Assembly: GCA_051530055.1 (NCBI GenBank)
Contig: CM121341.1
Span: 14,920,784-14,984,783, forward strand
Source: Neoechinorhynchus agilis
Taxonomy: Eukaryota > Animalia > Acanthocephala
DNA: 64,000 bases
Direction: 5' to 3'
The notes beneath the pieces are model-generated. The model worked only from the letters and a program-made list of their open reading frames with translations, did no database searches and was not told the origin of the DNA. How positions within the stretch are numbered: the first letter of the stretch is position 1; each line of letters begins with the position of its first letter. Position numbers and translations under genes: made by a program. Positions 10,401 through 61,428 of the stretch are shown here, piece after piece.

Positions 10401-13400
10401 CCGTAACCCAGAAACTCCTTACGCATTTTCATTCGTGGAGATGCCACATGGTGATTAATACTAAGCATTCCCTCACAATAATCCGCCAGTAGTGGCTAGC
10501 AATATCCCTTATGGGATAATAAATTATTAAATAGTTATTCTGGACCATTTCTCTCGTAAATCTGTGTGTTTTATCATCACTTAAACTTAAACGTACCGCA
10601 GTATTTTCGTTTTTGATACTTTTACTCCAATATCTCCTCTATTAGTTAACTTCCTTATTGTAGTGGGTAAAGAACCAAACGGCATACATCATCCTGATGA
10701 TCAAGCAATGGATACTGCTGACCATCCGCAAACACCGTCATCATCTCGGAAACCTGTCTGTGTGGAAGCAGACGCTTTCTGGGCCTCAATCGACACTGTC
10801 CGACCTACAGTTTTCGCGAGCAGCCGCGACCTTCGACTTCAGTTGGATAATATCAAGGAAGTTTTGTCAAACACCGATAATGATTGGGAGAAGCGAAGCG
10901 ATGCACTAAGACGACTCCGATCATGCATCACACCTTCTGCCATTCAATATTTCCATACCGATTTTCGATTGGCAAGTCAACTTCAGGTTCCACTTCAACG
11001 AACCCTAAGAGATCTTCGAAGTCAGATAATAAGGGAAGCGTGCATCACAGTCGCTTACATGAGCTATAAACTCGGTCAACAGCACTCATGCGGATTCGAT
11101 CTTCTTGCCGAGAACCTAATCAACCCCCTTCTCTCATTGATTCAGAATAGTGCTAAAATAATGGCAAATAGCTCCGTTTGCGCCATTTGCTTCATGATAG
11201 AGTATACCGAGTCAACGAGACTTATCAATCCTATACTTTGCGGTCTTTCATCAAAATCGAAAGATATTAGAAGGTAAGCTCAGGGGCAATTTTTGAATTT
11301 AAAATCATATCTTGTAGAAGGATATTTATGCCCCTCTAAAAGTTATTTCTATCTTTGCTAATCCATATTGACTCTTTAATCAACTGAATCTTGTATAACC
11401 AGTTCCTAGTATCTTTGTGACGAACAATAATAGTCCTTGATAGATGCGTCGTGACCTTCTGTCAAGGTTGCCCTGCTGCAAAGACTTTAATCTAACCATT
11501 AGCGAAGTTGAATTCATAGTTTAAGCGTCCTGAAATTTTTTTATTTCAGGCTGAAGGATTGTAGTAAGTCGCATACTCGTCTAAGAAGGAACCTAATTTA
11601 ACGGTATTGGCTCGAAGCAGTTTCCCTTGTAACAATGATACTTAAGTTAAAGATAAAATCCATGAGTATTTGGAAATGGGGAAAAATTGTGTATCGAAGA
11701 ATCACTTTAATTGAAATATTTCGTCCAATCACACTGGACTTCTTCGGTCAATTGTTGCTTGTAAGTTTTTAAATATTCGAGGTTCGTGTCCCTACCTCTA
11801 CATAGTGATACTTAAAACGCATGATCTTCTGATTAGTCGTTTGTCGCACCCATTATAAATACGGATAATGGAGAATATTTTCATTTCGATGCATTGCGCC
11901 AAATGTTATTTTAGGTCCTACAACAATGCGCCTAGAAAGAGTTTTTATATTTCTATGGAACACATAAGAAATTATGGAAAAGCTATTTTAAATAGCGTTT
12001 AAGTGGCTTTTAGCATAGAAACTTTACGGAAATTAAACCTTCTTTAATATTCCTGCTCAAGTTTTAGGACTAAGTGACATCACAAATAAAGCGTTCCATT
12101 TTGCTTATTAATGATCTTCATCATGACTTCTTGGTTTTGATGTACATTGATAATTACTTAACTTTAATCGAGCTTTAAAATCACCGAACTAATACGCTGT
12201 TTAGATATACATGTGAATTTATCTATAGAATACTTTCAACCTGGCAAGTCTCAACACTTTCGCGATATTCGAGTCAACTGCAGGAAGCAATAAAATCGGG
12301 AATCGAAGATGCGGACGTGGATGCAAGAATGCACAGTCGAAACTCATACGTGGTGTTCAAGCAATATTTCCCCGGTCTTGCTGATATGCTGCTCAATAGT
12401 CTTGACAGTGGAAAGAAGAAGATATTAAAAGACGGGTCCGAGGGGTGCAATACTCCAGCGACCGTACGAAGATGTACTACTCCTGGAGTCCAAAATTCAA
12501 GAATCAGGAGAGCGATAACTCCACGGCCACTTGGATCTTCATCGACAGTGCGATCGAAAACCCCCTGCGCCAATAGAAGTGTGACTAGTTCATCGTCTTT
12601 GAAACCGAACGGGATTTCAAGCATATCCCAACCTGCTAGTAGGGCTAATAGTCCTTTGCGAGTCGCGCGATGCAAAACACCAGCAACGTCGACAAACAAA
12701 TCAATTCCTGCTTATCCTTCAATAAGAAGTAGAGAAGTGAGTCCTTCGAGTAGAACTTCCACGCTCAAATACCGAACAAGAAAAATGAAGGAAGATAACG
12801 TAGCGGCGTCCGAGACATCCAGTGTATCCTCAGATCGACCCGTGAGCAGAAAAATCGGGACTTCTCAATATTCTATAGATGTGCGCCAAAATTCGAATGG
12901 AAGTGGAAAGCACAGTTGCGAGGTTGATCCTGCCCAAATGCTAGCTTTGATGGTAAGTACTGCATGGACGGACAAATACGAAGGCCTAATGATTCTTCAA
13001 AAATTTATTGATCTTTCTGGCAAACCACAGCAGCAGACATACACTGAAGCAAATAGCAAAGGATTTAGGTCTTTGAGCAAGTCTGAGATCCAACGAGCAT
13101 GCGACCAAATGGTAAAAATGTTCTCAGACGCCCATGGGAAGGTTTATAACCTTTTTCTGGACGTCATGTTTGATTTCATAGGAACTTTTTACAACCATTT
13201 GTCAGAATGGACGCTTCCTTTGCTTTCTGGACTGCTGACCAAAATCAGTACAGAATCAGCCGTTTCTACAGCAAGTCTTCAAAAAATTCAGTCTTGTGTT
13301 GATTTGATGAGAAAGCGGTTCCCATTGGATCGCCAATTTTGGGCTGCGATGCAAATCCTTTCGATTGATGATAATCCTTCGGTAAAGATGAAATTAGCCG

Positions 13401-15094
13401 TTCTACGATTTTTGGATAACTTGTTAGGCGATATGCAATCGGCTGATGTACCTCCAGCAACTGTTCCAGAAATGTTACTGGGTACAGCAGCTATCATACG
13501 TATGACGGGAGACAGGAAAAGTTCCGAACTCCGAAAACTTTCACAGCGGGTTTTATTCTCATTCGCTCAGATGAATAACGCAGAATTCATGACTATTTTG
13601 TCCAAACTTCCTCGTGAATTCAGATTGGCAGCTTCTTCGTACGTGATGGACTCTCGTACTCGACCGAATTGTATTAATTTTGATAAATCGCTCGATGACG
13701 CATTCAACCAATGCAATGCGACTTTAAGAAAATCAATAAAAAGGGCAACAACACCGATATACCCTAACGAAAACGGGAATCAAAGTGGAAGTCAACGTTT
13801 AAGACCAATCACACATCGATCACCAGTCTCGAATCTATACAAATGCGCTGCTGCATCAACTACGCTTCCTCGAAACACTCCATATGTGTCTTTAAGCAGA
13901 ATTCCGAAACGATCCAAGTCTCGTTGTGACTTCTCTCTGCCACCTCAATCATCAGCAGCATCCAGTAGCGCTGAATCAAGCGCTGGTGGAGGCGCTATCC
14001 ATTCTGCGATTGCATCCGGTACTTCAACGGTTGTCCTAGAATTGACCGGTAACGATAAAGTGAACGCTTTAGCACAGGAAATGGATTCAAAACTTTCACT
14101 CCGATCAGCTGGAACATCGAGCTCATCTTCAACTGGATTGAAATTAACGAATTGGACGAGTTCAACAAATCATCAAGCAAGTGGGCACACTAGTGCGTTC
14201 ACTACTTCTGTGGATGGACCTACGTCCAATGCAGTCGCAAACAAAAGATCAATCACGTCGGCGGACCACGTTGGTGTGATTGGCTCCGTGATTTATCAAA
14301 TATCAAGACAAGATAATCCAGTGGAATCGAGATACCATCATATGCAGTGTCTTCTATCAATGATATCAGCCGCAGATTCCGCTAATGCAGGATGGACTCA
14401 GCATTTCGACACCGTTCTGTTTCTAGTAATCAGGATTCTGTTTGAGCCTTACGTTCTCCTACAGACTATAGCTCTAAATATCCTGCAATGGATGTTGTGT
14501 AATCAGCCTGATCGGTTTGACAACTGTAATGAACTAACAGTCGTGCGGCTATTGGAATTCCAACGCGACCAACTTTCTGCTCAACCTTCATCTACAACAG
14601 CAGTCCAGTCGTCCAGTCTTCTGATCGGATCTATTCCTACACACGCCGACCTCATGCAAGCCCTTGACGATACCATTACAACTGCCGCAGTTCATTTGCC
14701 TCTTGGGGAATGTTTCCAAGTTCTTAGACCCATAATCGAAACCTCAGAGTCTACTTGCATGACGCTGTCCGCAATCCGGATGCTCGATACAATGATCACT
14801 AAACGTATGACCTCTACAGAAGCTATGTCACTCATTGATCCTCTCGTGTCTAGTCTACTCGTAGCATGGTCCAATGAACAGAGTTCAGTGAGGAAAGCAT
14901 CCGTCTTTTGCCTTGTATCGCTACACAAACTAGTCGGAAGGGATGCAATGAACCCTCATTTAGCCGATCTTCCACCCAGTAAACTTAAGCTACTCAATGT
15001 ATACATCGACAGGTCCACAACGAGTGGTTCAGTTCTTAATTCTGGTATGAACTCGAATGGTTCCATTAATGCCAACAAACTTGTTGCTAAGTAG
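7416..15094 (+). CDS. CLASP: CLASP/Orbit/MAST microtubule plus-end protein (TOG1 part, TOG2, TOG3, C-terminal CLIP-binding domain)
   Basis: PICKLLKDPNKQ|VRYYALSILIELYKQVG and R|LQTLFERFDEV match TOG1. DWEKRSDAL...DLRSQIIREACITVAYMS and SKSKDIRR|YTCEFIYRILSTW...DADVDARMHSR match TOG2. C-terminal NEQSSVRKASVFCLVSLH...LKLLNVYIDR. Exons 7416-7617, 7668-7768, 7813-7901, 10664-11273, 12205-15094 have matching phases. Further 5' exons (e.g. 7238-7354) are uncertain. Confidence 0.92.
11640..11735 (-). repeat. Short dispersed repeat, copy 1 of 3 (in CLASP intron)
   Basis: The reverse complement reads ttggacgaaatatttcaattaaagtgattcttcgatacacaatttttccccatttccaaatactcatggattttatctttaa, matching 25846-25910 and 59455-59545. 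Confidence 0.75.
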
Positions 15095-28899: not shown

Positions 28900-30679
28900 T
28901 CAAACTCTACTGGTAGTTGTCAATTTACGCTTTTGTCCAGCCAACAATGATTGGTTGTATGTGGGATAGTACGTGAATTGGTCAACCATCTGACGGCCAA
29001 ATGAAACGTAATCGTGGTTTGATGCCGGGTAATTTTGTTGAATTGGATATTGTTCTTGGTTGTGACGCTGATATGATTGATTGGTGCGAATATTTTCATT
29101 TGGAGTTTCGTCGATCCTTAAATCTGACAAGTCTGATGAATTCGATCTAAACGAGCAAGAGGGAGAATTAAATCCCATCGGTGTTTTCAAATCAGTCAAC
29201 TGATTAATCGTAGATTGCTTGCTCAATTAACACCCCCGTGGCAAACTGCCGGTTTCTTTTGATTTGATTAAATCCAAGCGAATATGCCAATGTTGTTCTT
29301 TCAATAATGTATACACAATCAATTGAGATCAAAAGATTTTTAGCCGGGACCATGGAAACCGCCCTTAATTTAGAGATAAGTAAAAATTATTAGCTGAATG
29401 GCTTATTGAGATTATCGCTACCGATTAAAAAATTAATATTTTAAGCAAAAACTACGAATTAAAGCCTTCAGGATTTTAGCCAATCAAAATTTACGTGGCA
29501 CAGCAGACGATTTCGAGTGTGCGTATTGCGCTTTAAAATTTATTAAGTGAGTCAATAATACAAATTAGTCCCGAAACCGAAAAATTACAACGGCAATTGA
29601 TTGACAGCCTCTTGATTCAGCGAAAAATGATACATATTATGTGAAAATTGAGCATATTTGAGAGGTGGGCGGGTAATAAAAAATTGGACTAAGTAAATAA
29701 TTGCCTCTTGTGAGTGAGAGAATAAGGGACACATGTGTAATTGATTCCCGCCCCGCCAACTAATGGATTTCGCGACACCTGCCTTCTCCTATGCCACGAA
29801 ATAAACATCAATTAATTTCGCTGTAGGGCAAAAGAAATGAGGGAGTGTGTAATGGTTGTTCGGCCATTTATTCTTAAAATAAACTAACCTTCCGTGCTTT
29901 CGATTCGCTGCTCGGTCTCTTTGTCGCCTATTCTTAAACCAATTGGTAACTTGAGTCGTTGTCAAGTCGGTTGTTTGTGCCAAATCTTGTTTTTGCTGTT
30001 GAGTCGGGTATTTACAACTTCTATAAAACTCGCGTAAAATCGACCTGGATCGTTCTTTAAAGCAATAACTGGTTTCCTCGCCATCCCAGATTGTTCTTGG
30101 AAGTGGATATTTACGTCTTATTCGGTATTTTGTTACTGGATTGGCGTCTACCTTTTTTTCATTCATCCACTCAATGTAGTGGGCTTCCATCCACAATTCC
30201 TGAAGAATGCAATGATATTTTTGATCGAACTCATAGCTTTGCAGAAGTTGATACAAGCGTTGAAAATTACCCGTTCTGAACTGTGCGTGAGCTTTCGCAA
30301 CCAGAAATATTTCACATTGCCGCAAATGTTCTTCCATTTCAGATTTGAGGGATTCCACAAATTCAACAAGTCTCTTAATATCATCTACTTGTAATAAGAC
30401 CTCACAAATGCACACCACTTGTTCCGGTGTAAAATTTATTGAAGTCAGGGGTGGTGCGGGAATGGCCGTGTTGGATCCAATGTCATCATTGTAGTCTAAC
30501 ATTTCGCTGCACACAAAGGGAGGAGATATCTTTCCAGTGCACAGAGTAACTTTATCGCTCCTTCTCGTTTGGTGTCGGTAATTTAAGGACCCACCCGAGC
30601 TTACAGACATACGCATTTCCATAAGGAAGCGAATGCTGCAATCTGATTGGCTGCTAATATTTCTTTTTTGTTTACTCAA
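28900..30679 (-). CDS. Six1/2: SIX-class homeobox, Six1/2 (sine oculis) subfamily
   Basis: SIX domain [13 protein letters not shown]...[24 protein letters not shown]...[10 protein letters not shown], then [26 protein letters not shown] (ETSY marks Six1/2) and [10 protein letters not shown]. Exon 1 ends at 29889 (gttagt donor). Probable exon 2 is 29221-28900, and a short third exon to ~28744 is possible. Confidence 0.93.
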
Positions 30680-31369: not shown

Positions 31370-33145
31370 TTAAACGAATTGTCTGACGCGGTTTCTCAGC
31401 ATATCCTTGAATGATCGATCATTATAAATCTTTTCAAAGAACTCGAACCTTTGCTCTAAATCGTCTCGCATTGTCATTGCCGCTTTATTGCGATCTTCTT
31501 CTGCACTTAAAGCCAAAGACGTTTCGATGCTGTTCAACATACAAGCAGCCATTAGACCAAAGACAAGTTCGTAAACGACATCGGCCGAAGCTTCGTCGAT
31601 TCGACCATATCCTTCAATTATATCGGCTATGACGTCTATCAGTGATTCGTTGGTCGTATGGAAACGGAGCGCACAAAGAAGAAGGTCGACTATCACACAA
31701 GTGTAACGGACATGCGCAAAGTGCCCAACACATAAATCATCCGCGGTTTGTGGGATCTTGTCTACTCGAAGGTGGACTGTATCGACACCAAACGCTAAAT
31801 GGCCTATGACTTTGTGGCAATAGGACAAATCAATCTTATCGAGAAGTTCAATGCTTGTCATGAGCATAGAACGACGATTGTCGTCTGAAATCGTAAACAA
31901 ACGATTGAGTAGCATTTCTTTGTCACGCTTCACGGATTTGTCTGTCATGTAATGAAGTTCGAGTTCATTTACGAAATCAGCTTTTATAGCAGACGATTTC
32001 GAGCAGGAATGTAAAAAATGCGAGAGGGATATAAATTGCGTTTATGAGTTTTATTACGATAAAAAATAGATTGCTTAAAAGGTCATGAGAGCAGAAATTA
32101 CCAATCGGATCTGTAGAAAACTCGAATAAAACAGAGGTCCTTTTTAATTTAAATCAACTAGAGAAATGTTGATGCGAACTTTGATGGACATTTTGGTCGC
32201 AATTTACAAAGCGCGAATAAAATTTCGAGCACGTTAAAATCATTCAAGAAATTGGTTGTTGACCACATAGAATGTTGGTTTACTTTTACGAAGTAACGAT
32301 TTTAAAATAAAAAGTGTTAAGTTAAGGATTTATAAATACTATTTTTGATACGCTTACAGCATTTACAAAAAAATCCTAAGGAATTATAGTGGGACAATAC
32401 GGCCAAGATTACTTAGAGTACAAGAATTGAAACCTTCTGCATTTAAAGGGCATCCATTAGCGCACATATGGAACCTTCTCAATAACTGGCCAATACAAAT
32501 TCTGAGTTTTCGATCGTTAGAAAGCGTCGGTCTCTCCGAGAGAGCGATATGTTGATTATGATACATTAGCCAAAGATAATGCTCTCGAGTTCTTTGGAAC
32601 TTTACAAATAAGTCACCGAACTTTGTCGGAATGATATCAGGTACCTGCAGACATTGAGCAGCAGATTGTTGAACATCCAGAAGTTTTTTAACAAGTGTCT
32701 CATTTACTAACGGAGATTGAACGGTCAGTTTAGCCCATAACTGTTTTCCGCCGACTTCGATGGTGAAATTCTTATCACACTGCCAACTCACGGATCTATG
32801 TTGCTCATAAAGTTCACATTTATCGATATCATGACCGTAGTTCAAAGATACCAAATGCTTTATATCATTAGGAGTGATATGATGATCGACTAATCGATTG
32901 AGAAAAGCAGGTTGTAAATTCTTATTAATTGTTCTGTCTAGTTGAGCAAATCTACTTATGCTAAGTCCTTTATATCCATTTTGGAAATATTGAATACGAT
33001 CGTGTGAAGAGAATTCCGGTCGCAGCTCGTTAAACACTAGCAAAAGACATCTAGTAAGATGCTCATCTGGACGTACAAGCATTCGTTTAAAGCTCAAATC
33101 ACCAGTTGCTACGAGACATGATCTTGCTGGAATATAGTATTCCAA
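31370..33145 (-). CDS. Hydroxylysine-kinase (HYKK/AGPHD1) / APH-fold protein with degenerate catalytic motifs
   Basis: N-lobe CDKNFTI..WAKLT..LQVPDIIPTKFGD..YLWLMY..IGQLLRRFH. A phase-1 intron 32412-31981 joins the 253-aa and 192-aa ORFs (CTL-T-DFVNE). The C-lobe aligns with HYKK, with HLAFGVDT at the HGDxxxxN position and HFAH at the DFGD position. Confidence 0.65.
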
Positions 33146-33284
33146 TTGAACTTCATTAGATACCTGGAATCGAACTGTTATATCACATTGTATGGCACCT
33201 CGCTTCGCTTCTTATAAAAAGTCCTAATTTCTACATTTGATTCTAGTTTAATAATAGCTTTAATGAAAAAATAACGTTGACTCA

Positions 33285-33791
33285 TTATTCCCAGGCAAGC
33301 GAAATGCGGTGCATTAGTGCAACGATAGCCATTCGATCAGTAAATAGAAACGAATGATCGTAGAACTCAGAATCAAGAGATTTCTCCCCAATCTTTTGGC
33401 AATATTCGAGTATTCTAAGGCGATTTGGAGCGAAGTCCGGGATCACGTCACTGATACGAGTTGAAATGGTGGTTGAGCTTGTTGGAAGACCGGTGAATTC
33501 GTCATATGAATCGACTTTTTTCGCCTTAAAGTCGATTTTTGGTCCATAATCTTGTAAACGAATATTTTGAGATGATGTCGTCCAGCTGGTAGATGCTAAA
33601 TCAATCTTTCGAATAATCTGCTCCTCTTTTGCTTCATTCACTAGGTTTTCAGTGATTTCGGCAAACCATGATTTACTGAAATCGTAAAGGCTACGTAAAG
33701 GTTTTCCTTGAGGACAAGAATGGTAACTTGTTATATGATAGTTTTTACATCGAGAGCAAAATTTCTGGATCGTAATCGCAGAAACGGACAT
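33285..33791 (-). CDS. Orphan ORF with CxxC-H-H-C cluster; separate gene or 5' part of the HYKK-like gene
   Basis: The ATG directly follows an acceptor (ttaccttgcag|atg). 168-aa open frame containing CSRCKNYHITSYHSC. It ends in TAA with no strong donor before it. Confidence 0.5.
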   Translation of the reverse strand: MSVSAITIQKFCSRCKNYHITSYHSCPQGKPLRSLYDFSKSWFAEITENLVNEAKEEQIIRKIDLASTSWTTSSQNIRLQDYGPKIDFKAKKVDSYDEFTGLPTSSTTISTRISDVIPDFAPNRLRILEYCQKIGEKSLDSEFYDHSFLFTDRMAIVALMHRISLAWE

Positions 33792-34824
33792 CTGCAAGGT
33801 AATATTATTAAACTTTAGGGTTCAATTATAACATCGAAATAAAAAACATCTATGAGTACCCGGCATTTTCTACGACACATCAGGGGGACTTGAGTAGTGG
33901 ACGGATAAGTGAAGAAGCTTCGAATTCACAGGTTAATAACTAGAAATAAGACTATTGAAATCTCTTTTGTATTATGGATCTTCGCAAATGTCTCTTTGTG
34001 GAGGTCAAAATTGAGTGGAGTGACAATAGCCATGGAAGTTTACGCCTCTAGAAATATACAATGGATAATATTCGTCAATTTGATTTTAATCGACGAATTC
34101 GAATACCTTAGGTCCGTAACGTCTTTGAGTGCACGCTGGTATTCTTTTTGAATTGCACTACAAAGGAGATCCCTGTTTGGCTAAACCGTCACATACACAA
34201 ATTTGTCAACATTAAGAAAAAATTGCATTAATAATTGTCTGGTATTTAATACTTTTTCGAGGAAAAATTTGATTTCAGTATATCTATATCACAAGAAGTG
34301 TTTTTATTGATGGCGAACTAAAAAGTGGAAATAGAAAAATAAGAAATCATATCTTATTTCGCTTCGCTTACATCGATAGGCGTCCTCTGATTTTTCATAA
34401 AGAATATTTAAAAAATAAAATTTATTTGGGATTAATTTTATGCTTTGAAATTAATCGCAGAGAACGCTCACAGGAGCATTTTGAATTTTCGATACGCCCA
34501 TTAGTATTTCTTATAGTTTATTCTTAGACTCATAACTCCCAAACAACTTTGAGAGCGAGCCATTTGGTTTATGCAATAAGACTCAAATAGGCGTCCTTTT
34601 TGTATTAGAGAGAGTCATTGACTCTATAGCGAGAGAAATATGAAACACTTGATACGTAGCTCGCAAACACTTAAGAACAATGAAAGTTTTTCAAACCCAG
34701 AATCATCACTTAAGGTGTAAGACCGTAGTCATGTTAGTACCTGGCAGGATTATGCCGGCTGAGACTTCGTGGATCCTTTATCGCTGCGGTCGCAGGGCAG
34801 GTCTGATAGGAGTAGAATTATTGA

Positions 34825-51970: not shown

Positions 51971-54900
51971 TGGGCAGCAGGCAGGAATTTCATTTTTGGG
52001 CAGCAGGCAGGAATTTCATTTGCGGTTTCTGTACTGCCGCCTAGCTCAAACCGTGTTCTCCGCTTCCTCCCACCGTGTTCTCCGGTTTCTCCCTTCCCAA
52101 TACTAACCACTCCCAAACCCCTAATCCCCACCCCCTTCCACCTTCAGTTTCCCCACCCCAAATCTCCTCTTCTCCCTCGCTTCACTCTTTAAATACTGTC
52201 CACCCACCCTTAGCTGGCGGCGCCCTCCAAGACTCCTCTCCACACTCAAATTCGACTTCTCCTCAACAATCTTCTCCCTTCCTTAATTCCGTTCCTATCA
52301 TCCCGCTTACCCCTCTTCCCTCCTCCCTGCATTCTAAGTCTCACTCTGCTCCACCATTAAAACCGAACCCCCCTTCCTCCTCGGCCTCATCTAAATCCCC
52401 CACCTCCTCTCTAGCACCCCGTGCTGCTAAAAAAACCATAAACCCCTCCCATCCTTCTACGATTACGTTTCAACGTTAGCCCCATCAAAACCTACCACCT
52501 TCTCCCCTGTACATCGATTTTCTAGTAAAAAGCACACACCCCTACCATCCTTCAACGACTACGTTAAGCATCCCTCGCCTCGTAAATTAACTCCTCCTAA
52601 ACTCCTTTCATCCTGCCTAAAACCACTATTCCGCACCCTACCAAATCTGGGAATTTTCGCTTCGTCCCTCAGAAGCGAAAAATACCTTGGACGCTCACAC
52701 TACCTCGCCTCTTACCACCACCTCTTCAACTCCCAATATCCTCCTTACCCCCGAGTTCATCCCGCATACACAATTACCATCCCTATGGTCCCTACACTTA
52801 AATCACCCCTTACTAGTGTCCACCCACGAATCCATTACCCCCGAACTACCCCATCGGTCAACTCCCATCCCTTCTCTCTCTGCGCAGCTTCAACCCTCTC
52901 CGTCAGTGTCCACCCCTCATGTCCCTTCTAAACATCCCTTTCCAATAATCTTTTATTCTAACATCCGCAGCCCCCTCCCCAAACTGGATGAGCTCCATAT
53001 AGTGGCCTCTTCTTGTAACGCCGACATCCTTGTAATTACGGAAACATGGCTCTCACCCCATAGCAAATTATCTGCCTTCCTTCCAAAATTTCAAGCTTTT
53101 CACCTCACAAGGGACTTCCGAAACGGTGGAGGCATATCGATCTTCATCCGCGCCTCTGTTCCTTACCATTGCTCTTCACCCTACCTTTTCATCTCCGACG
53201 ATCTTGAATGGCTTTACATCCAACTTCATCTCCCCTCCGCAATGGCCAACGTGAGATCTCTATCGCTGGCCTTTATCGCCCTCCTTCCTCAAACATCCCA
53301 GACACACTTCAACAAATAGACCACCTATTTACTGACCTACTTTCCACTTCCTCAGCTAACTTCATCATATTGGGCGAGTTTAACAAACTGCCGTTCCCGC
53401 CCTCGCTCTCTCATCTTTCCCAACTCGTTACTTTCCCCACACGCTTCTCCTCCCGCCTTGATAAAATTTTCTCAAACATCAGGCAATACTCGTGCACTAC
53501 CAAACTCCCCCCCGATCGCCTCGTCTGACCATTGTTCCATCCTTCTCTCCCCCGCATCACCTCAAAAACGTACCTTTTCCGACCCCTACGTTGTCTGGGA
53601 TAATCGTGATCATCATACCCAATCCTTTGCTGCATGTGTCAATTCTCTTATCACGCAAAACCGCTCTACCATCTTTGGCTCTTACCCCTCGATTGCAATG
53701 GGCTCTTTGTTAAATCTAATAGAATCTGTGATGAAGGCCTCCTTTCCTCGCAAAAAAATACGAATCTCAAACCGGGACCCCCCATGATTCTCGCCTTTTC
53801 TAAAACCCTTCAAATACAGGTCACCAATGCTTTCCAGTCAGACAATCCCGCTTACCCCTCCCTCCACTCCACACTGACCAAACGCATCCGAATAGCCCGC
53901 AAAGTATTCCTCTCAACTCGTCTCTCGTCCGTTCCCAATCGAAACTGGTGGTGTAAAATAAAAAAAATGTCACTGGTCTTGGTAGATCCACCCCCTTCGC
54001 ATCTTTCCCCAAATCTGATCTCCTCTCAATCCTCAACACCATGGATAAAAACCTCTGTCCTCCCCAAACCTAGCATCCATTGTCCCAACCTCCCTTCTCA
54101 CTTTCTGACCCGCCCATTCATACATGCCCTTCCTTAGTTTCCCCTCTCGAAATCCTAGAGATCCTTAAACGCCTGCCCCGCCATTCTTCCCCCAATTCGA
54201 CTATCTCAAATTGGGCCATTCATTCCATCATCCCAGGACTTATCGATCTACTAACGCACATAACGAACCTTAGCTTTCTCCTGGGCTCTTTTAAATCGTG
54301 TCTTAAGGAAGCCTGTGTAAACCGATTTCCCCCACATCCTTTCGTCCCATCTTTATCCTCTCACCTTTCTCTAAAATCTTAGAAAAATGTTTTAAAACCC
54401 GCCTACTTCCCTTCTTCCTCAAAAAACATCTCCCCTTCTCAATTCGCTTTCCGTCCCAATTACTCTTGTTCTGATGCCCTCCTCTGCATCTACGATACGC
54501 TTGTGCGCAGCTTAGATTCCAGTCCAGCATCAACCATCCGTCTCGTGCAACTGAATATTTCCAGAGCGTTCGAGTCGGTAGATCACTTTCTTCTCCTCCA
54601 ATCATGTGCTCCCTTTGGCCTCCCAACCTGGCAACTCGCTTGGATTTCCTCTTTCCTTTCCAACCGCGAACAATATATCCAATGTGGAACTTCTTGTTCC
54701 TCTTCTCTGCCTATATTTAAAGGGGTCCCCCAAGGCGTCGTACTTTCCCCTCTCCTCTTTGGCATTTTTCTAAATGACCTCCACCCCTCGCTCCCTCTAC
54801 CAAATATTTTCTCTATGCAGATGACCTCACAGTCATTACCATCGCATCCCCCCTCTCAACCTCTCCACAAACATGGACGAGCTCAACCATCTCATTTCCT

Positions 54901-60297: not shown

Positions 60298-61428
60298 ATG
60301 GCAGAAGAAGAAGTAGCAGCAGTTGTGATCGATAATGGATCGGGTATGTGCAAGGCCGGATTCGCCGGGGACGATGCTCCTCGTGTCGTGTTTCCGTCAA
60401 TCGTTGGACGGCCCAAATACCAGGCAGTGATGGTCGGAATGGGACAAAAGGACTCTTATGTTGGAGATGAAGCTCAGAGCAAGAGAGGAATATTGACTCT
60501 AAAGTATCCAGTTGAGCATGGCATCATTACAAACTGGGATGATATGGAGAAAGTATGGCATCATACGTTTTACAATGAACTCCGAGTTGCTCCAGAAGAG
60601 CATCCTACTCTTCAGACCGAGTCTCCGTTGAACCCAAAAGTGAACAGAGAAAAGATGACTCAAATCATGTTCGAAACTTTCAATTCACCGGCCATGTACG
60701 TCGCCATTCAGGCCGTCCTTTCTTTATACGCCTCAGGGCGAACAACCGGAGTTGTTCTGGACTCTGGGGACGGTGTAACTCATACAGTTCCTATCTACGA
60801 AGGATACGCCCTTCCCCATGCCATTCTCCGTCTGGACGTCGCTGGGCGGGAATTGACCGAGTACATGATGAAAATCATGATGGAACACGGTTATGCCTTT
60901 GTCTCATCGGCAGAACGGGAAATCGTGAGAGATATCAAGGAGAAACTGTGTTATGTGGCGCTGGACTTTGAACAAGAATTGGCTATTGCCGCAAGTTCAT
61001 CATCGATTGAAAAGAGTTACGAGCTTCCTGATGGTCAAGTGATCAGCATTGGAAACGAGAGATTCCGCTGCCCTGAAGCGTTGTTCCAACCCTCGTTTGT
61101 AGGAATGGAAATCCTTGGAGTTCATGAAACTACTTTTAACTCAATAATGCGCTGTGATATTGATATCCGCAAAGATCTTTATGCTAATACCGTCCTTTCG
61201 GGAGGCAGTAGCATGTACCCGGGTATTGCTGATCGAATGCAAAAGGAAATGACAGCCCTTGCACCAAGCACAATCAAGATTAAGATTATCGCCCCACCTG
61301 AACGTAAATACTCAGTATGGATTGGTGGATCTATTCTCGCTTCATTATCAACGTTCCAATCAATGTGGATTTCAAAGGAGGAATACGACGAAAGCGGACC
61401 TTCGATTGTCCACAGAAAGTGTTTCTAA
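60298..61428 (+). CDS. Act: Actin, intronless and divergent
   Basis: Complete 376-aa [20 protein letters not shown]...[10 protein letters not shown]. Confidence 0.99.

Follow-up and report, generated by a model that had tools for sequence, protein, structure and literature searches.

A probable dioxygenase–pseudokinase fusion of rotifers and acanthocephalans, with both domains apparently inactivated in Neoechinorhynchus agilis

Reported substrates of ALKBH4 dioxygenases include methyl-lysine in actin and N6-methyladenine (6mA), and the matter is still debated. Small hydroxylated amino acids are ligands of homoserine and hydroxylysine kinases. Among animal proteins, ACAD10 and ACAD11 provide a precedent for joining an APH-fold small-molecule kinase domain to a second metabolic enzyme, in their case an acyl-CoA dehydrogenase; the kinase domain there precedes its partner in the chain and is reported to be active. 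Here, we describe a gene that appears to join relatives of both families, in a 64,000-nucleotide stretch of the acanthocephalan Neoechinorhynchus agilis (GenBank assembly GCA_051530055.1, contig CM121341.1, positions 14,920,784 to 14,984,783 of the forward strand; hereafter the window, in which all positions are given). Its coding region runs from 33791 to 31370 on the minus strand, and the spliced product of 602 amino acids is an exact match to the NCBI hypothetical protein ACOME3_003553 (P0001). We consider it probable that this protein is a fusion of an ALKBH4-type domain with a pseudokinase, in which both domains are inactive in acanthocephalans, and that it now serves as a non-catalytic binder.

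A preliminary description of the locus had proposed an APH/HYKK-fold pseudokinase preceded by a novel extension of at least ~85 residues. This extension is longer (~226 residues) and belongs to a known class, the ALKBH4/NMAD-1-type 2-oxoglutarate (2OG)/Fe(II) dioxygenases, because a profile of the acanthocephalan N-terminal domains (the N. agilis protein, P0003 and Pomphorhynchus laevis KAI0981783.1) matched the NMAD-1 structures 8hbb and 8hb2 with E = 2e-17, in addition to ALKBH8 (E = 9e-5). An exhaustive HMMER search with a two-sequence profile against 1.84 billion representative proteins returned 21 proteins at E ≤ 1e-3, and all of the non-acanthocephalan ones aligned to residues 4–231. Among the matches that were examined, ALKBH4-type status was indicated by the source names of Glandiceps and Tetranychus proteins and of P0011, three carried the Pfam domain 2OG-FeII_Oxy_2, and P0011 matched the solved NMAD-1 with E = 2.8e-52. 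As its N-terminal part is a domain of this type, the protein is not a stand-alone HYKK paralogue but an ALKBH4–kinase-like fusion of a kind also found in rotifers.

The residues expected to hold iron and 2OG were then examined in an alignment with 24 ALKBH4 proteins from rotifers and other animals, all of which keep the catalytic ligands. In the N. agilis protein, the His of HxD is replaced by E142 or F143, the Asp of HxD corresponds to D145, and the distal His is replaced by L185. The Thr and the final Arg of RxxxTxR are replaced by V199 and N201, with R(V/I)AITLRE of ALKBH4 aligning to (R194)C-LLLVFNE. The altered segment, TRC(I/L)LLV(F/Y)N, is common to all three acanthocephalans, and both P0003 and the P. 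laevis protein likewise lack the distal His, with equivalent losses in each. The cysteine motif CxCKGxRxCxxC was found neither in the 602-residue model nor in P0003, where only the second cluster (KFCSRC) is present. Judged by its sequence, this is a catalytically dead ALKBH4-like domain.

Orthologues were identified in two other acanthocephalans. From one species come P0003 and P0002, the latter a 371-residue UniParc fragment that is 54–57% identical to the N. agilis protein. In the second, P. laevis, both domains lie at one locus of contig WNNJ02002634.1 (L009; 10351–11070 and 15812–17266), where an ALKBH4-like exon (10351 to ~11019, tblastn 6e-19) lies 4.8 kb upstream of a single open reading frame (ORF) of 484 codons. 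This ORF matched the C-terminal domain of the N. agilis protein with E = 2.8e-11 and P0002 with 2e-13. The P. laevis sequence is strongly diverged (20–23% identity). Since the kinase-like domain lies in one exon in P. laevis, intron 2 of the N. agilis gene is absent there. The P. laevis annotation splits the orthologue into KAI0981783.1, which has an unrelated-looking 3′ exon, and a next gene of at least 681 amino acids.

The link to kinases came from rotifers. Two of the ALKBH4 matches (P0011 and P0016) have C-terminal tails, and the next ORF on the P0011 contig showed a weak match to PF01636 (APH). Using the reconstructed P0016 gene (L001) as a query, we recovered proteins from Brachionus plicatilis, B. 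calyciflorus and Adineta steineri, along with ~20 metagenome proteins, in which an intact ALKBH4 domain is followed by an extension of 75–430 residues; downstream exons encoding the C-lobe were recovered from six contigs. In every rotifer lineage examined, at least one catalytic position of the kinase-like domain has decayed. L006 (IGFIHKNLNPENLF ... IIGFLRVNVSFYLYDLAIC), for instance, keeps only the His and the Asn, and the clade of L004 (GFILSDFNLENIRL ... LLLTAFQNIKLSFFLNDLAIC) keeps the Asp and the Asn and has lost the DFG-Asp, a position occupied in rotifers by G, A, Q or other residues. The N-lobe is mostly lost in the Brachionus-like copies P0025, P0026, P0036 and P0039–P0041, in which KGxSxG and the IG..W helix are spaced by 75–115 residues, and L007 lacks the entire catalytic-loop segment. 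Several of the rotifer-type metagenome contigs carry a PP2C gene upstream.

The best-preserved copy, L006, matched the NCBIfam model NF003558 (homoserine kinase, type II) with E = 4.8e-7, PRK06148 (which we take to be a bacterial fusion of an APH-like domain with an aminotransferase) with E = 1.4e-3, and Pfam APH with E = 1.2e-3 (19.1 bits, compared to a gathering score of 23.2). It also gave ~30 subthreshold PDB matches, nearly all of them protein kinases aligned at HRDLKPEN/DFG. The consensus of 13 rotifer C-lobes matched NF003558 with E = 9e-5 (model positions 171–269) and PRK06148 with E = 7.6e-3, the N-lobe of P0011 matched PRK06149 with E = 0.05, and one rotifer C-lobe ORF (P0050) bears the Joint Genome Institute (JGI) label 'RdoA'. 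Because of these matches and this label, we place the rotifer domain in the APH superfamily, where it appears nearest to the homoserine-kinase-II/HYKK-like branch. The C-terminal domain of the N. agilis protein is best explained as a member of the same class (APH, type II homoserine kinase or HYKK-like), an assignment that carries no claim of orthology to animal HYKK (AGPHD1), for which the support consists of the weak matches of rotifer domains to the bacterial HYKK-like fusions PRK06148 and PRK06149.

We next consider the former catalytic motifs of this domain. The DFG position is robust: HFAHVRYTCVIVDL of the N. agilis protein aligns without a gap to GFLRVNVSFYLYDL of L006, and therefore H486 stands for the DFG Asp. 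This residue is His in all three acanthocephalans and is followed by F487, from which D498 is 11 residues away; L006 has the same spacing, as does the Pfam APH consensus by our own count. For the catalytic loop, P. laevis was informative. Its 'GIIHTQFSADCL' aligns with 'VIGHLAFGVDTV' of the N. agilis protein, and KMGIIHTQFSADCLV, which has a near-canonical 'giiHxxF' context, is paired by BLAST with KVIGHLAFGVDTVHL through matches at K, I, H, F, A/V and D. One L-INS-i alignment had placed D466 as a retained catalytic Asp; this ceased to be the preferred placement after the P. laevis sequence had anchored the register at the conserved His and Phe. With moderate confidence, we adopted HGDxxxxN = H460-L-A462-F-G-V-D466-T467. 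Compared to L006, whose loop reads HKNLNPEN, the His of HGD (offset 0) is H460 and H, the catalytic Asp (offset +2) is A462 and N, the hydrophobic residue (offset +3) is F463 and L, the acidic residue (offset +6) is D466 and E, and the Asn (offset +7) is T467 and N. This is also the register of the preliminary description (HLAFGVDT for HGDxxxxN and HFAH for DFGD), which came to be favoured once P. laevis was added, and both motifs lie where they had been placed (HLAFGVDT beginning with H460, codon 31801–31799; HFAH beginning with H486, codon 31723–31721). In P. laevis, the positions of the catalytic Asp, the Asn and the DFG-Asp are taken by Q, C and H. Whichever register is chosen, the canonical kinase residues are absent from the aligned N. 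agilis sequence.

Other candidate residues of the putative cleft are conserved. A candidate β3 lysine, K301 (WAKL), does not vary among the N. agilis protein, P0002 and P. laevis (where the motif is WSKL); D319, an acidic residue of the next helix, is conserved too. K301 was tentatively matched by eye with the rotifer segments FILKV, FIVKI and YLIKL. Identity between the N. agilis protein and P0002 is 76% over residues 456–506 and 51–56% elsewhere, and all 20-residue stretches with at least 85% identity start at 478–489. The former active-site cleft would thus be the most constrained part of the domain, which suggests that binding of some ligand has been retained.

Relatedness of the acanthocephalan and rotifer C-terminal domains was assessed in both directions. 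An hhalign comparison of the acanthocephalan pair with eight rotifer domains yielded 230 collinear columns (P = 0.011, probability 3.9%). When rotifer hidden Markov models (HMMs) were scored against shuffled sequences, the whole-domain model gave p = 0.026 for the N. agilis protein and p = 0.007 for P0002, the C-lobe model gave p = 0.013 and p = 0.02, and the N-lobe model gave p = 0.17 and p = 0.014, respectively. Cross-lobe controls with these profiles were not significant for the N. agilis protein, and in P. laevis the N-lobe obtained a better score from the C-lobe model than from the N-lobe model (p ~0.025). In the reverse direction, an HMM of the three acanthocephalan domains (N. agilis, P0002 and P. 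laevis) was scored against the eight rotifer domains and 1000 composition-preserving shuffles of each, and similarity was found with E ~2e-6 to 4e-3. L006 scored highest (13.1 bits, E ~2e-6, HMM positions 134–326 against residues 141–367; equalled by 1/1000 shuffles), followed by the A. steineri N-lobe in P0042 (E = 1.8e-4, 4/1000), L004 (5/1000), L007 (7/1000) and L005 (14/1000). The position of the domain directly after KGxSxG and the sister-group relation of the two taxa fit orthology. Taken together, we regard the acanthocephalan and rotifer C-terminal domains as very probably homologous.

A number of results weigh against reading the C-terminal domain as a kinase relative. Residues 227–602, P0002 and the P. 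laevis domain had no Pfam, NCBIfam or PDB sequence match at E ≤ 10 (PDB searches by phmmer and hmmsearch). AlphaFold2 gave a mean predicted local distance difference test score (pLDDT) of 33.3 for the whole protein with a two-row alignment and of 43.7 for residues 221–602 with a ten-row alignment, and the best Foldseek match of the ten-row model in the PDB had E = 0.22. All rotifer matches to APH families are below the curated cut-offs. The register of the catalytic loop varies among automated alignments, with A462, T467 (alignments A8 and A9 and the joint C-lobe alignment) or H469 (the HMM alignment) at the Asp position, and the invariant D466 lies close to that position. Rotifer profiles score the N. 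agilis protein weakly (p = 0.013–0.17 per lobe) and score P. laevis no higher than its own shuffles; from the other side, three of the eight rotifer domains (L001, P0027 and L003) did not exceed their shuffles with the acanthocephalan HMM. Finally, both intron junctions of the N. agilis gene are taken from annotation and sequence comparison. The protein itself matched no kinase family, and neither structure prediction gave a confident fold. A further comparison by hhalign with NPTII, a single-sequence APH representative, gave no match and was uninformative, because the rotifer positive control failed as well.

We infer the kinase fold of the N. agilis domain from its rotifer homologues, and consider its retention likely. 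The earlier proposal of an APH/HYKK-fold pseudokinase is partly supported: a degenerate kinase-like domain is the best explanation, indirectly by way of rotifer homology, and the novelty of the extension is not borne out. The elements predicted by AlphaFold2, at low confidence, are four strands at 271–304, a long helix at 311–328 and further helices, then coil at 458–489 and a helical C-terminal part, an order that may be compatible with an APH-type kinase. The low confidence of these models also fits the most probable of the alternatives. In it, the C-terminal domain shares its ancestry with the rotifer domain and has since given up the kinase fold, eroding to a mostly helical remnant that provides a spacer or some new surface for interactions, so that 'pseudokinase' would overstate what is left. 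The near-loss of the N-lobe in several rotifer lineages and the missing catalytic loop of L007 are in line with such erosion. Against this, the acanthocephalan N-lobe is full-length, with predicted strands, the helix and the conserved WAKL lysine, the 11-residue F-to-D spacing after the DFG position is kept, and conservation is strongest over exactly the segment from catalytic loop to DFG. We consider this alternative unlikely.

The conservation of the cleft could also be taken to mean that the kinase-like domain is atypical but active, with D466 or another residue as the base and H486 contributing to the binding of metal or substrate. Neither D466 nor H486 varies among the three acanthocephalans, K301 and D319 are retained, and some kinases long called inactive have been found to work with non-canonical residues. 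In the preferred register, however, the positions of the Asp, the Asn and the DFG-Asp are non-acidic or non-amide in N. agilis (A462, T467 and H486), with Q, C and H in P. laevis, and the catalytic residues lost vary from one rotifer lineage to the next, an argument for catalysis having been abandoned before the split. An active kinase is therefore improbable in our assessment. Still less probable is a C-terminal domain unrelated to kinases that resembles the rotifer domain and APH motifs by chance and shared composition: the lack of a direct family match, the low hhalign probability and the failure of P. laevis to exceed its shuffles would fit it, but five of the eight rotifer domains outscore 986–999 of the 1000 composition-preserving shuffles made of each, collinearity with L006 extends over 190 aligned positions, the cross-lobe control is negative for the N. 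agilis protein (though the P. laevis N-lobe favoured the C-lobe model), and in the sister lineage, too, the KGxSxG end of ALKBH4 leads directly into the domain.

The preferred explanation, a doubly inactivated fusion, would then run as follows. The locus would be the acanthocephalan orthologue of a fusion common to rotifers and acanthocephalans (Syndermata) and apparently restricted to them, consisting of an N-terminal ALKBH4/NMAD-1-type dioxygenase and a C-terminal APH, type II homoserine kinase or HYKK-like domain. In rotifers, the dioxygenase keeps HxD...H and RxxxTxR and is likely active, and the kinase-like domain, already without one or more catalytic residues, may be a regulatory or substrate-reading module for it. 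In acanthocephalans, the dioxygenase has lost its Fe and 2OG ligands as well, leaving both domains apparently inactive. Because both have lost catalytic residues, its most likely role is a non-catalytic one in binding or scaffolding, through the pseudokinase cleft, the dead dioxygenase pocket or both, and the cleft with its candidate lysine K301 may accommodate a nucleotide, a small ligand or a peptide. A modified-lysine reader is an attractive idea by analogy, since related kinases bind hydroxylated amino acids and ALKBH4 is reported to act on methyl-lysine. Extended to the whole of Syndermata, this would make the pseudokinase a reader of a ligand (for example, a modified-lysine side chain or a nucleotide) that steers ALKBH4. 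The acanthocephalan protein would be a 'reader only' that still binds the former substrate but does not turn it over, and would regulate ALKBH4-type targets (methylated actin or 6mA-DNA, for instance) by sequestration or in a dominant-negative manner; we offer this as a speculation that is unlikely to hold.

The features of the gene are collected in Table 1. The preliminary description had built the gene from two ORFs. Both are present (32384..33145 and 31370..31948, minus strand), and the gene is larger than these, as a third ORF upstream of them (33285..33797, minus strand) contributes a further exon at 33791..33324. The intact frame of more than 440 codons that had been noted was also found, the join of 32413 to 31980 being open for 453 codons, but the annotated donor of intron 2 is at 32434 (AAG|GTTTCA). 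The spacing from FH to S(V/I)K is 26 residues with the annotated junction, 32 with the earlier one, and 24 in P0002 and P. laevis. As the annotated spacing is nearer to that of P0002 and of the intron-less P. laevis exon, we preferred donor 32434 and dropped 32413. The chance that exons of 156, 243 and 203 codons remain open is 1e-5 to 2e-8 each (~7% stops per codon at 36% GC). The genome annotation of N. agilis was made with BRAKER (PMC12690905).

Table 1. Positions of the N. agilis fusion gene and of its sequence features within the window.
Feature	Position	Strand	Remarks
Whole coding region, ACOME3_003553	31370..33791	−	Exons 33791-33324, 33163-32434 and 31980-31370; stop codon 31372-31370
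Exon 1, residues 1-156	33324..33791	−	N-terminal two thirds of the ALKBH4-like domain; QDYGPKIDFK and FTGLP motifs; degenerate HxD site
Degenerate HxD site, F143-Y144-D145	33365-33357 (codons)	−	In exon 1
Exon 2, 5′ part, residues 157-226	32954..33163	−	End of the ALKBH4-like domain, from the alignment with 24 ALKBH4 proteins
L185 at the distal-His position	33079-33077	−	In exon 2
RCLLLVFN in place of RxAxTxR	33052-33029	−	In exon 2
KGLSIS motif	32971-32954	−	In exon 2; terminal in the ALKBH4-like domain
Exon 2, remainder, residues 227-400	32434..32953	−	Putative N-lobe of the kinase-like domain
Candidate β3 lysine K301	32731-32729	−	In the putative N-lobe; candidate αC acid D319
IGQLLRRFH helix	32494-32468	−	In the putative N-lobe
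Exon 3, residues 400-602	31373..31980	−	Putative C-lobe
Catalytic-loop equivalent, G459-V472	31804-31763	−	In exon 3
DFG equivalent, G485-H489	31726-31712	−	In exon 3
D498-L-L ('DLA' helix)	31687-31679	−	In exon 3
G523-Y524	31612-31607	−	In exon 3

Two places in the model drew attention. First, the initial 39 bases of annotated intron 1 (33285..33323, minus strand) encode ALMHRISLAWE in frame, followed by TAA, and this peptide resembles the β-strand ALQCDLTIRFQ of the orthologue P0003 in the alignment. Joining AWE to VSNEVQ of exon 2 gives a 17-residue spacing identical to that of P0003, and the same region is a single uninterrupted exon in P. laevis. The annotated splice takes out 11 codons of a core ALKBH4 strand. 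This segment is possibly the end of an ancestral exon that is now skipped. Because no GT donor was found at the point after AWE, the original donor may have been lost in N. agilis, with splicing now from a cryptic in-frame site 36 nt further upstream; failing that, an error in the model or in the assembly would be the explanation. Second, the sequence ttgcag, which resembles a splice acceptor, abuts the start ATG (33791) within 33792–33800 on the minus strand, and P0003 likewise has a Q in front of the start M (TTQMSVV). The model may lack a further 5′ exon, which perhaps carries the CxCKGxRxCxxC motif.

The window is animal DNA of 35–45% GC and also carries SIX homeobox, CLASP, actin and nucleotide-sugar transporter genes. 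A SIX-class homeobox gene, apparently of a single exon, adjoins the fusion gene downstream (29789–30679, minus strand; SIX1_SD E = 1.7e-34 and a homeodomain). An intronless actin gene (60298–61428, plus strand; Pfam Actin E = 6e-143) lies ~27 kb away, and its presence near an ALKBH4-like gene is probably coincidental. A CLASP-like gene occupies 10663–15094 on the plus strand, with CLASP_N at 10663–11277 and then a serine-rich ORF of 925 codons (12317–15094) that has no Pfam match. Between 50000 and 56000, GC is raised to 0.47–0.49 and GC skew is strongly negative (to −0.54), and an ORF at 52687–53319 has a weak match to Exo_endo_phos (long interspersed nuclear element-type endonuclease); this part is probably a retroelement remnant.

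Both halves of the protein come from known superfamilies, and what is new is their fusion and the apparent double pseudoenzyme state. In the public records that we reviewed, these proteins are named only 'hypothetical' or 'alkB-like', and no Pfam domain is listed for any of the ALKBH4-fusion proteins. We found no paper in the searchable literature that links ALKBH4 with an APH or kinase domain, nor one that describes an HYKK-type pseudokinase, in keeping with the earlier remark that no animal HYKK pseudoenzyme had been described. The lineages would form a natural series, from rotifers with an active dioxygenase and a dead kinase-like domain to acanthocephalans in which both are dead, yet 57% identity is kept, and such a series would be useful for asking what pseudoenzyme domains do after catalysis ends. 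The fusion also bears on why ALKBH4 needs a partner domain, and it fits a stepwise reduction of genes and functions in parasitic Syndermata. In practical terms, one gene is annotated as two in P. laevis, and the N. agilis model possibly leaves out a piece of an exon.

Compared to ALKBH4 and NMAD-1 (8hb2, 8hbb and 8haz), the N. agilis protein is homologous over residues ~45–226 and shares QDYGPKxxFK, FTGLP, PxxLxxLEY and the C-terminal KGxSxG of ALKBH4. It differs in lacking the Fe and 2OG ligands and the N-terminal Cys motif, and in that the domain continues into ~376 extra residues. The rotifer fusions (P0026 of B. plicatilis, named 'alpha-ketoglutarate-dependent dioxygenase alkB-like protein', P0027 of B. 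calyciflorus and P0042 of A. steineri) have the same two-domain layout, and in both groups the kinase-like domain begins directly after KGxSxG. Motifs common to the two are IGxxxxxW/F, (R/K)S, xF, S/T-x4-DL(A/L)xC, I(I/L)xGY and FExxY. The rotifer proteins differ in that their dioxygenase keeps all catalytic ligands, their kinase-like part is only 13–19% identical to that of N. agilis, and their intron positions are different.

The rotifer orthologues are collinear with the type II homoserine kinase model in both the N-lobe (model positions 4–140) and the C-lobe (164–301). In the N. agilis protein, the His of HGD, the aromatic residue that follows the catalytic position and the 11-residue spacing between the DFG-Phe and DL(A/L) fit the pattern of NF003558, PRK06148, PRK06149 and PF01636, whereas the protein lies below every family threshold and lacks the catalytic Asp, the Asn and the DFG-Asp. 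Finally, in contrast to ACAD10 and ACAD11, its kinase-like domain is C-terminal, degenerate and fused to a dioxygenase.

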